A DNA stretch of 63,525 nt, counting the filler, from Reticulomyxa filosa (taxonomy: Eukaryota; Protista; Foraminifera), in the NCBI GenBank assembly GCA_000512085.1. It is 17 parts of 17 records of this genome, joined end to end, with 100 filler letters (N's around TTAATTAATTAA, not from the genome) between each part and the next. Parts side by side here need not be neighbours in the genome. Positions count along the whole stretch, not along the records: positions 4,450 to 11,012 come from ASPP01007554.1; 16 more parts are not named here. One strand, given 5' to 3'. The translations under genes and the position numbers were made by a program. The notes beneath the pieces were generated by a model that was given only the letters and a program-made list of their open reading frames with translations, did no database searches and was not told the origin of the DNA. Numbering within the stretch: the stretch's first letter is position 1; every line of letters begins with the position of its first letter. Positions 4,542 through 10,970 of the stretch are shown in pieces.

Positions 4542-5189
4542 GTGTGTTTTTTTTATAAAAATGACAGCCACTTTGTAGGTGTAACAGATATTACAACATT
4601 CCCGTGGAGACACTGTGTAATGAGCAAATTTCAGTCTAGAGAAGAGTCATTTTATGCGATGAGTTGCAGTATGCGCGTTTTACCATTTTTCAAGAGTCCT
4701 GGCTATATGCGAGGAATGTTTTTATTAGATGGAGTATTCAGTGCTATATTTACCATACCTCCAGATCAAAACGAGGACTATGTCATTCGAATTACACCTT
4801 GTTCAAATTTGCTAAGTGGTATTCGTGCTGATATTCAGCCGGATGTTTATGACAAAGATGAATACTTCAGGATTATTGATATATTAAAAGTACCTAACTT
4901 AGAAGAAATATTGATACAATTCCGGCAAGGATATAAAGATGCACTGCGAAGCAGAGATCGTCTGATTGCCAAAGGCATGATCCCAAAGAAAAAAGATACA
5001 CCAAAAAGTGATAAAACAGGGACCAAAGATCATGACACCTCAGAAAATATGATGTCTTTGGAACAATGGCTTTCCTACATTCGAATGCATGGTCAAAAAA
5101 TATTGAGTGACGTTAAAGTTGCACCTGGCAATCTGTTTGTTGGAGATGTTGAAAAACTCAGGAAACAAGACTTTTCAGCGTTGATGTGA
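4542..5189 (+). CDS. Hypothetical protein, probably the terminal exon of a 5'-truncated gene
   Basis: 215-codon open frame of normal complexity in AT-rich DNA; no family recognised. Confidence 0.6.
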   Translation: MCFFYKNDSHFVGVTDITTFPWRHCVMSKFQSREESFYAMSCSMRVLPFFKSPGYMRGMFLLDGVFSAIFTIPPDQNEDYVIRITPCSNLLSGIRADIQPDVYDKDEYFRIIDILKVPNLEEILIQFRQGYKDALRSRDRLIAKGMIPKKKDTPKSDKTGTKDHDTSENMMSLEQWLSYIRMHGQKILSDVKVAPGNLFVGDVEKLRKQDFSALM

Positions 5190-7120
5190 ATTAAATCAAG
5201 TAAAAAAAATTGTAATTCAAATTTTTTTTTTCACACAATAAAATAATTTGTTGTTTTTCTCTTTCAGTTGTTCCGTTTGTTTTTGGATTTGTGTTGTGTT
5301 TTTGGAGGGAAAAAATTTGTGAAAATACAAAATACTTTTGTAAATGCAAGCAACAGTAATTCAATAAATCGCATTGAAGAGACAAAAAAAAAAATAAAAT
5401 AACATTTAGTCTATTACAACTCACAGTTTTATAGAAAAAAAGAGTATGTATTGGTTTAAAATAAAAATTGACAATGTAGAAAGAAAAAAATGGATACTTA
5501 ACGCGTAGTTGTCTGTTTTCACATTAAAGAAAGAGATGTTTGGAATTCCATTCAATTGTGGTTCTTGTTTTGTTTGTTTTCTAAAGACATATTTTGTTTA
5601 AGCGAACATCATTCATATTTTATTTTTTACTGATTAAGTTTAAAAATACGAATATGAACAAATTAATTAATTTATTGAAAAATCAGCATATTTTTACATT
5701 GACAAAATTTTGTTTAAAATTCAATATATTTTTTAATTTATATACACTTTTATGAAATTTAAAGTATTATTACATTTATCTATCACAAATTTTAATACTG
5801 TCTTGTTTGTTATTCACAATTTTTTTTTTTTGAATTTTTATACATTTTTGTCGAATAAAAAGAATTTAATCATCATGTAATTATTCTGCATATAAAAAAT
5901 CTTATTACAAATATCTATTTTTAAAAACATAACTTTAATTATTCACTACGTCAAATAGTACTCAAATATTTCATTTTCCTTTTTTAATTTTAATTTTTTT
6001 TTTTTTTTTTAATTAATTAAATGAAACAATTCTATTTTCTCATAACTTGCAAATAATAACTATGAATATTCAAAAAATAATTTTAATTAACTTATTATTA
6101 TCAAATATCAAATTAATACTACGCACCTCAATATTGGTGAATGTATTGATTAATTTTGATTATTGAAATAAATCAAATATAAAGACATTTTGTAACTATA
6201 TATATATTTTTTGGTTTATATTAAAAATAAATAAATAAATAAAAAATGAAATAACGTAATTGACAAAGTTTGTCAAATTCATGTATCCATCCAAATTTAA
6301 TTTGTACTAATTTAGTACAACGTTTCCTAATTAATTGAATTTTTTTTCTGCTGACTGTTTGAATCACAAATTAAATACAACAAATAAAATAATAAAAAAG
6401 TAAATTAATTAATGAAAACTTACCTACTGTAAAGTTTGTATCATTTTGTTTTTGATGATGCAAAATGAACAAAATTATAAAAGGTGCTTTCAAAAATAGA
6501 TTTTAACAACACATAATATTTAAAATTGAAAAATATAAATCATTTGATATTATAAAAATAATTAGCTCCTTCAGAATATGGAAAAAGAAAGCATTGCAAA
6601 TCATTCTTTTGTCAAAAAAGTAAAATATAAGATTTTATTTTTTTAACTAATTAGTGTCACTTGTGCGAGCATCGAAGAAGTTATTGTTTATTATTTCTAT
6701 GTTATTGCATAGATTGCTATGTATTTTTTCCATCTGACTCCGAAAATGAGTGTAGAAATTTTTGAGAATATATTATGACGAATTTCAATTTGTGGTTGAC
6801 TTACAAAGAGTTTATCACAAGACTTAATTGTGAAAAAAAAATATACCAACATTTCATTTGGATAATATCTAATAGATAAAAGCCACTATAAAATATTTGA
6901 TATATTGTACCACTCGTTGATGTAGTTAAAAATATTGTGGTCTTGGTCACTTACCTTTTATTATTTTTCATGCACCACATTTTTTTTTATTTTTTTTTAT
7001 ACACAAGAAGTAATAATGCTAAGAAAATTGAATGAAATAAACAGCCATTTTTAGTGTAACAGACCCAGAAAACAGGCTAGTAACCGTAGAATTTTTTAAA
7101 ATGGAAAACATCTAATAGCA

Positions 7121-7915
7121 ATGTCAAGCAATCAAGTACCAACAAATACTGGACCATCAAGAATAGTTGGAGGTTGATTTTATATTGTTATAATAGTATA
7201 CATCTACAAAAGGTTAATAACAACAGGGAGAGTTATAAGAGGCGACGAGCCCAGATCAACAATCCAACGAACACAAGAAAGCGGATGGGAAGTAGTGAAT
7301 GCAATAGGACTCTTGTATGTTCAATATGTTATGTTTTTCAAACTGTAACATTATAATTAATAATTACAAATATATCCCAAAATAATTTTCATAGCTTTCG
7401 ATCACTTTTCAACGTTAAGTAATTTGTTGTTATAATACCCTCCAAGAAGGGTTACATGATAATTTCAACGTGGTTTGAACAATACAGCCTTCTGCTGTGG
7501 ATGACGCAGTAGCTGCTCGTAATCGTCAAACAGACGCTTTTCCTAACCCTTTCCCACAACAAAGACCAGGGGGTAGTCAAAGAGGACAGCCATTAGGACG
7601 GAGGATACACGGAATTTCGAACGTTCAGCGTATGTTGTTTTACCACGACCCTACTTTTTTTAAGAAAAAAGAATTACAAAAATTTCTAAATAAGGAAAAT
7701 TTTTTTGAGAATGAGTGAGAGGCCGAACAAAATTTATTTAATGTGATAAGCGTGTTAGGAGTTCTGTAAGATGATGACGTGGCCAAAATTTAATTGCGTT
7801 ATACGTGCTTCAAAAAAAAAAATAAGAAAAATAAATAAACTGATTAAAATAACATAATAAAATGTAATTTACAGCCGTGAATCAAATTGGATGTGGTGGA
7901 GGAAGCTGAGGATAG
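7121..7915 (+). CDS. SELENOK: Selenoprotein K/G-like protein, 113 aa; exons 7121-7172, 7227-7314, 7395-7413, 7488-7629, 7875-7915
   Basis: Spliced product MSSNQVPTNTGPSRIVGGRVIRGDEPRSTIQRTQESGWEVVNAIGLFFRSLFNPSAV...RPGGSQRGQPLGRRIHGISNVQPVNQIGCGGGS(U)G*. All four introns are GT-AG and phase-consistent. In-frame TGA at 7907-7909 is followed by GGA TAG. Confidence 0.8.
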
Positions 7916-7917
7916 AT

Positions 7918-8085
7918 GACTAACTTCTGACACCTTCAAGCTATACCATTTGTCTATTTATATGTGTTTCTACATATGTATGATGTGTTTTTTTTAAAAT
8001 TCGTTTGGCTGTGACATGACAATGATAAATAGAAAAAAAAATTGAGGGAAACCACTCATGAAATTTTTGAGTGGCAGAGTTAGTC
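7918..8085 (+). promoter_or_regulatory. Structured 3' UTR with a weak SECIS candidate (7980-8020)
   Basis: Nested complementary segments surround an ATGA-N12-AA-N20-GA pattern, but helix II pairing is poor. Confidence 0.3.
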
Positions 8086-8662
8086 GCTTCACTGCAAACT
8101 TTATCTTATCGGAAGAAGAAAAATACAAAATAATTGAAGTGAGATTCAGCTCTTACTGTTATCATTTTGTAACAGTTGGAAGTGAATTGTTGGAACGCTT
8201 CGCTGTTTCAACAACATTTTTATCATGAGAAGTAATCTCGAGTATTCAACCTAGAGATTGCGGATTGATTTTCCACTTCACTTTTTTGGCTTTTTTTTCC
8301 TCCTCACATTATCTATTTTTTTTCAACTCTCCAGTGTTAGTCGAATTATTGCTTGCTGTTTTTGTTTTCGATTTTATTTTGTTTTTTTTTGGGAGTATTT
8401 CAAAGTCATTGGATTTACTGAAGTAACAGCCATCCCTACTTTCGTTTGAAAAACGTATGTCATTTCCCTAGCGTTTTTCTTTGAAATTTTGCAAACAATC
8501 TTTACACTGTTCATATTGTTCGATATTTACATATCACAGACTTACTACTTGTTATAATAAACACAGTGTTGACGGCTGTTGTTAAATCTTTTTTGACAAC
8601 CGGGGTCTTGTTCCCAAATAAAGGAACATCGATATACAGAAGGCAAAAGCACAGAGTTAGCA

Positions 8663-10168
8663 ATGTCACTTGATTTTGCAGCCATAAAAACTCTGGTGGC
8701 AACAATTTCTTGCGTGTTTTCTCTTTGTGGAGCGCTTGTAATTATGTCTAGTTATGTGTTCTTCCCTGTACTTCAAAAACCTGGGAGAAAACTGTTAACA
8801 GTTAAAAAGAAAAAGTAAAATGTAGAGTGAAAGAGTTTCAAAGCTATCTTTTTTACACATAGCACAGATAGCGTGATGTATACATGTATATATTACGTAT
8901 CATAAATTATATATTTTATGTATGCGTGAATATGTAAACATAATGGACAAATTAAAATACGCACAGTACTTATCAATATCCGATATGTGCACGTCAATCG
9001 TGTATTTGATATCGCTGCATTATTGTAACATAAACAGATTGAGAACAGTGGACGTGGCGCAAGCGTTCTTAGGAATTTATTTTCCGTGTACAATGCTTGT
9101 GTGGACAAGTTGTATAGGTTATTTCATTTACAAAAGCATAATGCAATCAAATAATGGAAATGTCAAACTAAATATACAAAAGCATTTTCGACTGTATCAT
9201 GTGATATCTTGGACCACACCGATTGTGTTTAGTATTGGGCCATTGATTCTAATTTTGAAATTAAAAAAAAACAACACAGAATTTAGTTCGAGTATGACCA
9301 CAGGTGGATGGTGCTGGGTCGACCATTGGTATTACCAACTGCTCGGCGGCAAATGCATTGAAGTCGTAAGTCTCACGTGTACCATGTATTTCTATGTCAA
9401 CAGCTACATCTTATTGAAAAGGCAGCAACAGCAACAAAAAAGCTTGGACCAACAGTTGAATGAACAGTGGAACAAGTCGGGCCAGCCTTTTTTGAAAGAC
9501 CATCACTATCTCCCCACTTCAAATAATAGTTCAGTTTCTTGAGGTAATTAATTGTTATTTTATTATTATTGTCATTACTATACAAATGAAAGATCAAAGC
9601 AAACAAAAAAAAAAAAAAAAAAAGTGTCGGACAAATGTGTTGTCGATAATGACGATGATGAAGATAACGAAGATGATAATGACGATAAAAATGCTAATGC
9701 TCCATCGAATTGGTATCCCAACGATGATCGAAATAACAACAAGGACACCCGAAAATTCAAAAGGACAAGGAGAGCTTTGCAAATTTGTTGTACGTTCCGC
9801 TGATTTTGATGCTTGTTCGTTCGTTTGGTACTCTCAATATGATCTATCAACCGATTTGCGCTCAAGTCATGTACGGAGGCAATAAAAGCTTGACCGATTG
9901 CAGCAATGACACTATCTTAGGCAAATCCTTGAGCTTGCTTCAGGCTATATTTGACCCCTCCCAAGGGTTTTTCAATGCCATTGCGTTTGTGTTCATGGCC
10001 AAAGGCGTGAGAAAGGTTATGCTAAGTGCGTGTTCAAACTTATGTCGACGATTGTGTTGTTTCCGTGCGAGATTACCCAAAGTAAATAAGGTCGTTTTTT
10101 ACTCGCAAATCAAACAAGCGAAAAAAAAGAAAAAAAGTTATGAATTGAGTGTAAACAGCTCGGATTGA
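8663..10168 (+). CDS. 7TM GPCR, cAMP receptor/GCR1-like (multi-exon)
   Basis: Exon 1 (8663-8800) MSLDF...ISCVFSLCGALVIMSSY...PGRKLLT splices to YLSISD at 8967. Further motifs: FRLYHVISW, GGWCWV, LLYVPLILMLVRSFG, FDPSQGFFNAIAF. The third intracellular loop exon structure is uncertain. Confidence 0.85.
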
Positions 10169-10578
10169 GCAAATAAACATCTTTCATAAATATTATCCAA
10201 CCGTCTACACAACTATGGACAAATATACAAGAATATTTCTCTTCCTTCTTTTTTCCACAACTATTGTTGGATTTTTTTTTTTATAGTCAGTTTTATGTTT
10301 TTTTTAGATTTCAATTTTTCAAAATACAATAAAAAACACCACTTTTTTTTTTGTACATTCAATGTAAATGCTTCTTTCTTCACTGTCAGAAGACAGTATT
10401 TCCAATACATTCAAAAAAAAAAAAAAACTGATGTTAAATTGCTTAAACTAAAGACAATTTTTACAACTGCAACTGACTCTGTCATTTAACGAAAAAAAAA
10501 CGGAAATAATAACGCAAAGCAAAAAAAAAAAAAAATCTAAGTAATCAACACGGGAACAATAGATGTTCTTTCCTTTCT

Positions 10579-10970
10579 TCAATCATCGTCCAACCAATCG
10601 TCTTGGTTTTCTTCGCCTCCATCTTGTTCATCCATAACAAATTCGCGATACTTATCCAAGCTCTTCTTCAAAATGTTTTGCATGTCTTGAGGCTGTATGG
10701 AGGCTCGTCGGACATCGTTCGCATCCACAACTCTTAAACTGGTTTCTTTGCTGAAGCCACGAATACCAGCCAACAAAGTATTTCTACCGTTGGAAGGGCT
10801 GAGTTTGTTACCCGAACTGGACAAGGGGGGAGGTGGAAGTTTCGTAGGATTATCAATGGGCGGAAGAGACTTGGATGGCACCATTGCCGTCGAGCTTTGT
10901 GGAAGTTTCGGTGGAGAAGATACGATATTGGATCTCTGCGTCGTTATTCCCGCTTTGGAACAACGTTAAT
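10579..10970 (-). CDS. C-terminus of a WASP/SCAR-family Arp2/3 activator (Pro-rich, WH2, central, acidic); 5' truncated
   Basis: PPPP; WH2 GRNTLLAGIRGF-SLRVV; C helix DMQNILKKSLDKYREFV; acidic tail ending DDWLDDD*. Confidence 0.8.

Follow-up and report, generated by a model that had tools for sequence, protein, structure and literature searches.

A spliced, unannotated selenoprotein K-like gene of the foraminifer Reticulomyxa filosa ends in a conserved UGA that may be read as selenocysteine

Selenoprotein K (SelK; SELENOK in humans) is among the most widespread of the eukaryotic selenoprotein families. SelK and selenoprotein S (SelS) end as U-G-stop or U-G-R-stop, where U is selenocysteine (Sec). 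Human SELENOK has an isoleucine at position 77 and the C terminus MAGG-U-G-R, and SelS ends ...GGUG, with an upstream cysteine that forms a selenenylsulfide. Among Sec insertion sequences (SECIS), a GGGA-type variant is known from Toxoplasma. Here, we describe a SelK-like gene of the foraminifer Reticulomyxa filosa that lies at positions 7121-7915 of a stretch of 63,525 nucleotides (nt), filler included, in which 17 parts of the genome are joined end to end (hereafter, the window). The gene is real, is spliced from five exons, and encodes a small protein of the SelK_SelG family. It is a new and unannotated member of that known family, and it ends in a conserved UGA that may specify Sec.

How the gene compares with described systems depends on which part of the protein is considered. 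Human SELENOK has 94 amino acids, with His79 and Sec at position 92, and its helix has been argued to be amphipathic and peripheral to the membrane (bioRxiv 10.1101/2021.05.15.444318). Like SELENOK, the R. filosa protein is small and combines a short N terminus bearing G-x-V, a helix of the form W-x6-LFF[KR][ST]L, a disordered tail that is rich in Gly, Pro, and Arg and contains RRxGxI, a reactive residue near the C terminus, and a glycine codon after the UGA. Moreover, its helix is predicted to be amphipathic, as was argued for the human protein in the same study. Unlike in SELENOK, the helix is polar in its first half (RSTIQRTQESG), and the highest 19-residue Kyte-Doolittle mean is 1.09; a cysteine precedes the UGA by 4-5 residues, where the human protein has none; the UGA is four residues farther from RRxGxI; no canonical SECIS is present; and the Pfam score falls just under threshold.

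Other comparisons are similarly divided. Cys-type, Sec-less SelK homologues need no SECIS; unlike them, the R. filosa gene has an in-frame TGA-Gly-stop that is kept in its orthologue. By language-model features, its nearest relatives in the ESM Atlas are "Selenoprotein K homolog" clusters from Ascomycota, which at 115-120 amino acids resemble it in the two respects compared, features and length. SelS would be matched in arrangement if the TGA is decoded, as Sec would then be penultimate, followed by glycine and with an upstream cysteine available, but the two share no sequence kinship and the cysteine here is just 4-5 residues away.

A first-pass annotation made from the sequence alone had proposed five exons, and translation exon by exon reproduced that model exactly, with all introns bounded by GT..AG (Table 1). 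Three motifs named there (RIVGGRV, GWEVVNAIGLFFRSLF and GRRIHGI) were all found in the exon translations, as was a cysteine five residues before the TGA (TGT at 7892-7894 versus TGA at 7907-7909). Ahead of the TGA are 333 nt, or 111 codons, and the protein would reach 113 residues if TGA and GGA were both decoded. The GC content is 0.19-0.32 in the introns versus 0.37-0.51 in the exons.

Splicing is visible in public data. The sole run covering part of the region is X1 (2015, "organism A"), and its label as RNA is a guess. When the contigs of X1 were aligned over 6800-8600, one of 281 nt mapped to 7232-7314, 7395-7413, 7488-7629, and 7875-7911, so that exons 2 to 5, including the micro-exon, are joined at the predicted junctions. 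Three of the four joints proposed by the first-pass annotation are thus matched, and the spliced product appears to be expressed, insofar as the RNA label is right. The contig has seven mismatches to the window, which points to an allele, a paralogue, or a close strain as its source. A second X1 contig covers 8205-8388, a stretch that is probably part of the 3' untranslated region (3'UTR) of the SelK-like gene. Were intron 2 retained (7313-7345, plus strand), the product would read ...GLLYVQYVMFFKL-stop and would end more hydrophobically than the spliced form; the 281-nt contig represents the spliced form only. A short upstream open reading frame (ORF) at 7102-7116 on the plus strand (ATG GAA AAC ATC TAA) stops 5 nt ahead of the start codon.

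The gene is absent from public annotation. The locus belongs to contig ASPP01007554.1 (6563 nt) of NCBI assembly GCA_000512085.1, on which genes are called only at window positions 4620-5189, 8943-9803, and 9869-10489, and the record has no call at 7121-7915. That standard annotation would miss the gene had been anticipated, and this proved correct. A micro-exon of 19 nt is of the kind that gene finders typically skip.

One orthologue was found, and the comparison that follows is therefore one of two sequences. When exon 4 alone was used as a phmmer query against the full database, it retrieved P0001, a protein of 122 amino acids (E value of 7e-7, 66% identity) with the N terminus MSAGTQSNTGANAPPRIVGG. 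P0001 is encoded without introns at 38-406 of L001, a 1774-nt JGI contig, and L001 is collinear with all five exons over all four junctions by both blastn and protein alignment. Protein identity is 71% in exon 2, 100% in exon 3, and 66% in exon 4. At the DNA level, identity between the window and L001 is 0.78, 0.86, and 0.47 at codon positions 1, 2, and 3, and the same codon is used at just 34 of 59 identical residues. Such a distribution over codon positions argues that the protein is under purifying selection at substantial divergence. No candidate emerged from a word-index protein search with the 73-amino-acid ORF that contains exon 4, a similar search with P0001 returned nothing beyond P0001 itself, and scans of JGI metagenomes, one with exon 4 and one with P0001, gave no relatives.

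The contig L001 has features of its own. A convergent gene with a thioredoxin domain (PF00085, E value of 1e-23) occupies 914-1774 on the minus strand, a neighborhood that is not common to the window, and a long run of T (approximately 770-812) lies between that gene and the SelK-like gene. L001 may be genomic DNA whose genes lack introns, or it may consist of two transcripts joined together.

The protein is very probably related to the SelK_SelG family, as the first-pass annotation had held. In family searches, the natural orthologue P0001 stood in for the joined five-exon model, and it matched the Pfam family SelK_SelG (PF10961) with an E value of 3.6e-4 and 21.5 bits, slightly under the gathering threshold of 23.3 bits. 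The match pairs residues 29-107 with profile positions 15-75 of 86, and the non-repetitive N-terminal half supplies most of the score (18.9 bits for residues 20-57, aligned to profile positions 7-43). In a feature search of the ESM Atlas with P0001, the nearest clusters were all SelK_SelG (score of 0.90, 208 of 256 features shared), and the ten best family-bearing matches were PF10961 without exception. Queries that were shorter or directed at structure failed: exons 2 and 4 of the window taken singly had no Pfam match, an ESM Atlas search with exon 4 alone did not recognize the family, and no SelK structure turned up when PDB sequences were searched with P0001.

The conserved helix motif of the family is present in both the window and P0001. 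The first-pass annotation had called this segment a membrane helix, a description that the hydropathy does not bear out, as no transmembrane helix was predicted and the highest 19-residue Kyte-Doolittle mean was 1.09 (P0001). Instead, the segment AWEIVNAVGLFFRSLF has an Eisenberg mean hydrophobicity of 0.36-0.38 with a hydrophobic moment of 0.43-0.48, and we conclude that the helix (WEVVNAIGLFFRSLF) is predicted to be amphipathic and not transmembrane. The Gly/Pro/Arg-rich tail runs to ...GRRIHGISNVQPVNQIGCGGGS(-U-G) and, in keeping with tails of the family, places either a cysteine five residues from the end or Sec at the penultimate position.

The end of the coding sequence is unusually well kept. 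L001 ends ...GGC GGT AGT AGC TGA GGA TAG (GGCGSS-TGA-GGA-TAG) and so shares TGA-GGA-TAG with the window. The first-pass annotation had suggested that a TAA or TAG in orthologues would argue against recoding, and in the sole orthologue found, the terminal codon is TGA, followed by GGA-TAG. Conservation within the tail is highest at AGC-TGA-GGA-TAG and not at the cysteine, whose position differs by one residue from species to species (GCGGGS in the window versus GGCGSS in P0001). At the base composition of the 3'UTR, a glycine codon and then a stop directly after a true stop would be expected well below 1% of the time.

Over roughly 45 nt past the TGA (window 7904-7951, L001 401-446; AGCTGAGGATAGA, GACTAACTTC, and CT.TACCATTT), conservation far exceeds that of third codon positions. 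This segment may serve as a context for recoding or termination, or as a site of protein binding. A stem-loop directly after the UGA was only weakly predicted (-1.6 kcal/mol), as a GAGG/CUUC hairpin formed from invariant bases only. Coding read-through beyond the TAG is ruled out, as the two species differ by a 2-nt indel that shifts the frame.

Farther downstream, the 3'UTRs of the window and L001 align poorly except for collinear blocks, and both contain a two-helix hairpin resembling a kink-turn (K-turn), at 8222-8269 in the window. In an alignment made with MAFFT, all 12 base pairs form in both species (24 of 24 cells), with two compensatory and six one-sided changes, whereas control pairs slid along the alignment were just 33-50% paired. 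Independent minimum free energy folds gave the same architecture in both species, and the L001 version had a z score of -4.2. The internal loop of L001 reads 5' AAGAA / 3' GGAG, and in both species tandem G.A/A.G pairs with flanking purine pairs are possible. In layout, the hairpin resembles the eukaryotic SECIS (Rfam RF00031): helix I is followed by an internal loop, then by a helix II some 11-12 layers long, and finally by an apical loop. Further likenesses are its four possible non-Watson-Crick purine pairs, among them the tandem G.A/A.G, its location roughly 300 nt downstream of the UGA, and the covariation of its two helices between the species. The data are suggestive of a K-turn or SECIS-core geometry maintained by covariation. 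Just upstream, hairpin 1 (Table 1) seems to be conserved as well, the species differing in it by one compensatory change and several one-sided ones; this was judged by eye only, since its 3' arms were left unaligned by MAFFT.

How the terminal UGA is read is finely balanced. We give a roughly even chance to decoding of the UGA at 7907-7909 as Sec, such that the protein would end ...GCGGGS-U-G, and what favors this reading is the conservation of UGA-Gly-stop together with the K-turn-like hairpin of the 3'UTR. Sec insertion, a SECIS function for the hairpin, and the cellular role of the protein are all inferred. If so, the hairpin at 8222-8269 would be a lineage-specific, SECIS-like K-turn element that directs decoding of the UGA, and the cysteine five residues upstream could act as a resolving partner in a selenenylsulfide with Sec. 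By analogy with SELENOK, the small protein would be held at the membrane surface by its amphipathic helix, and the disordered Gly/Pro/Arg-rich tail would present the reactive Sec or Cys at the extreme C terminus. By the same analogy, the protein may be a membrane-associated redox or adaptor protein that either carries out redox chemistry or aids partner enzymes. The wider proposal, that foraminifera use Sec by way of a SECIS lacking two near-universal invariants (a core of R-AGA-A / G-GA-K in place of AUGA / GA, and no AAR loop), is tentative, and we would put it somewhat short of probable.

Alternatively, the gene might encode a Cys-type SelK homologue, in which the cysteine (TGT at 7892-7894; Cys119 of P0001) is the counterpart of the Sec of the family and the TGA is a plain stop three to four residues on. 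The GGA-TAG would then be part of a conserved noncoding block at the start of the 3'UTR, and the hairpin would either have a regulatory role that does not involve Sec or be a onetime SECIS that was exapted. We consider this alternative credible, if not quite an even prospect, and it is favored because SECIS invariants are absent and the cysteine is typical of the family. Several observations weigh against Sec, and most of them speak for a Cys-type protein. With Rfam covariance models at an E value of <=10, no SECIS was found in the whole part of the window that holds the gene, in 7880-8700, 7960-8135, or 8170-8300, or in L001 380-1000 or 650-760, the scanned stretches being as short as 111-176 nt. 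Pattern and fold scans in the manner of SECISearch likewise found no AUGA/GUGA-N9-15-AA-helix-GA in either 3'UTR. Unlike RF00031, the hairpin at 8222-8269 has AGA in both species where a SECIS has a near-invariant UGA, and the AUGA at 8225 and the GA at 8267 of the window are not kept in L001. Its loops (GAGUAUUCAACCUA in the window, UUGU in L001) share no conserved unpaired AA(R), and neither it nor its L001 counterpart is recognized by the Rfam SECIS model. Moreover, its covariation is statistically weak, as 122 of 500 shuffles reached the observed value for the two sequences.

The coding region and its surroundings add to the case for a Cys-type protein. All three neighboring ORFs (3 of 3) end with TGA as an ordinary stop, which also rules out a global reassignment of TGA. 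The cysteine sits in the context G-C-G in the window and GG-C-G in P0001, close to the GG-U-G of the family. In the P0001 tail, ...RRIRGLGDIQPVTQMGGCGSS, Cys119 is found 15 residues beyond the RRI isoleucine, just as human SELENOK has Sec92 15 residues beyond Ile77, and MGG-C-G corresponds to MAGG-U-G. When the PF10961 match is extended without gaps from profile position 75 of 86 (P0001 residue 107), it ends at about residue 118, just before the cysteine. Identity past the TGA runs on as GACTAACTTC and CT.TACCATTT for 20 or more nt beyond the TAG and includes a 2-nt indel, which indicates that conservation around the TGA is noncoding in kind. As for Sec itself, the literature yielded no account of selenoproteins from Reticulomyxa or any other foraminifer; in favor of Sec, 23 selenoprotein genes have been reported elsewhere in Rhizaria, from Bigelowiella natans (PMC7539508). 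Finally, the nearest language-model clusters are the SelK homologues of Ascomycota, and fungal genomes are all reported to be without selenoproteins (PMC5330540).

Other observations weigh against a Cys-type protein. It requires that a glycine codon and an in-frame stop fell directly after the true stop in both species, a coincidence far below 1%; the cysteine differs in position between the orthologues (G-C-G-G-G-S versus G-G-C-G-S-S), whereas S-TGA-G-TAG is identical; and a Cys-type protein does not explain why a covarying K-turn-like hairpin should reside in the 3'UTR of a SelK-family gene. The first-pass annotation had inferred that UGA recoding and a Sec machinery operate here, and that inference is left unsupported by the missing canonical SECIS, the use of TGA as a stop by the neighbors, and the competing claim of the upstream cysteine. 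Because a canonical SECIS was sought and did not emerge, we do not file this as an established selenoprotein gene.

Two further explanations are far less probable. The TGA could be a leaky stop with a selected backup, such that most ribosomes terminate there, occasional near-cognate read-through adds one glycine, the TAG two codons on limits the extension, and no selenium is involved. Some eukaryotes are known to have tandem stops after UGA, TGA-GGA-TAG is kept in the orthologue, and no SECIS was found in either 3'UTR. G at position +4, however, is not a context that promotes read-through, an extension by one residue has no evident function, and both the wider conserved block and the 3'UTR hairpin would go unexplained; we regard a leaky stop as highly improbable. 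Equally improbable is that a short low-complexity protein resembles SelK by chance, for despite a Pfam score under the gathering threshold (21.5 versus 23.3 bits), window exons that singly match nothing in Pfam, and the lack of a predicted transmembrane helix, the E value of 3.6e-4 derives mostly from the non-repetitive N-terminal half, an independent language-model search gave PF10961 for all ten of the best family-bearing clusters, and both length and architecture fit the family.

Several individual SECIS candidates were picked out by eye and rejected. The ATGA at 7980 could pair a U-run with an A-run in a helix of A-U pairs only, at approximately -0.5 to -3.5 kcal/mol. The ATGAs at 8016 and 8022 with the GA at 8112 belong to a long stem of low stability in which the GA is itself paired, and the ATGA at 8058 is within a simple hairpin. 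The GTGAs at 8139 and 8182 are without an adjacent 3' GA. The ATGA at 8225 with the GA at 8267 looks canonical in the window (U.U, G.A, A.G), and neither half is kept in L001. In L001, ATGA 674-N10-AAG could form only if 3 nt bulged out where helix II meets the GA, and better folds compete with it. Finally, a strong SECIS-like match at 9906-10011 lies within the coding sequence of another gene.

Table 1. Coordinates of the SelK-like gene, its terminal codons, and the conserved elements of its 3'UTR, numbered along the window
Feature	Position	Strand	Details
Exon 1	7121-7172	+	ATG at 7121; MSSNQVPTNTGPSRIVG plus first base of a Gly codon (phase 1); aligns with L001 76-96
Intron 1	7173-7226	+	54 nt, GT..AG; junction implied by collinearity with intronless L001; X1 contig stops short
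Exon 2	7227-7314	+	(G)RVIRGDEPRSTIQRTQESGWEVVNAIGL plus TT; conserved N-terminal motif and start of predicted amphipathic helix; X1 contig over 7232-7314
Intron 2	7315-7394	+	80 nt, GT..AG; joint in X1 contig
Exon 3	7395-7413	+	19-nt micro-exon, (F)FRSLFN; spliced on both sides in X1 contig
Intron 3	7414-7487	+	74 nt, GT..AG; joint in X1 contig
Exon 4	7488-7629	+	PSAVDDAV...GRRIHGISNVQ plus C; Gly/Pro/Arg-rich tail (AFPNPFPQQRPGGSQRGQPLGRRIHGISNVQ); as phmmer query, retrieves P0001
Intron 4	7630-7874	+	245 nt, GT..AG; joint of 7629 to 7875 in X1 contig
Exon 5, coding end	7875-7915	+	(P)VNQIGCGGGS-TGA-GGA-TAG; X1 contig up to 7911
Cys codon TGT	7892-7894	+	context I-G-C-G, five codons before TGA
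In-frame TGA	7907-7909	+	Sec codon or true stop; kept in L001 at 404-406
Conserved block	7904-7927	+	AGC-TGA-GGA-TAG-A..GACTAACTTC; 23 of ~25 nt identical to L001 (third codon positions, 47%)
Second conserved 3'UTR block	7941-7951	+	CTATACCATTT; CTTTACCATTT in L001
Hairpin 1	8187-8214	+	AUUGUUGGAAC / GUUUCAACAA; counterpart at L001 655-688, just upstream of the K-turn-like hairpin
K-turn-like (SECIS-like) hairpin	8222-8269	+	~300 nt after TGA; counterpart at L001 ~693-738
K-turn-like hairpin, helix I	8222-8225/8266-8269	+	paired in window and L001
K-turn-like hairpin, internal loop	8226-8231 and 8262-8265	+	5' UGAGAA (8226-8231) versus 3' GGAU (8262-8265); tandem G.A/A.G possible
K-turn-like hairpin, helix II	8232-8239/8254-8261	+	apical part 8240-8253

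The part of the window that holds the SelK-like gene contains no tRNA and includes several other reading frames. An ORF at 4542-5189 on the plus strand represents the C-terminal exon of a gene that the edge of the part truncates, and its own protein in the database is P0003 (189 amino acids). The portion within the window had no Pfam match; its relatives from an MMETSP transcriptome and from the foraminifer Bolivina argentea (58% and 45% identity) bear a patatin domain (PF01734). Downstream, a multi-exon gene at 8663-10168 on the plus strand comprises ORFs at 8663-8818, 8922-9542, and 9785-10168, contains several hydrophobic segments along with poly-Q and acidic low-complexity runs, and had no significant Pfam match. 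In the record, it is split into two genes, 8943-9803 and 9869-10489. On the minus strand, an ORF at 10579-10884, where the NCBI contig has no gene called, encodes a WH2 motif (weak Pfam match, E value of 0.014) followed by an acidic ...DDWLDDD end, and its product looks like the VCA tail of an actin nucleation factor of the WASP/SCAR type.

What the gene means for foraminifera turns on how the UGA is read. If the UGA is a plain stop, R. filosa has an ordinary Cys-type SelK homologue, and the pattern of TGA, one codon, and stop beside a family-typical cysteine is no proof of Sec. If instead the UGA specifies Sec, use of Sec would extend to foraminifera with a form of SECIS outside the accepted consensus, and the prediction of selenoproteomes in divergent protists would be affected. 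Ultimately, if the noncanonical SECIS is true, the SelK gene would be its first example and a coevolved SBP2 would be implied, and current SECIS finders would systematically miss the selenoproteomes of foraminifera.

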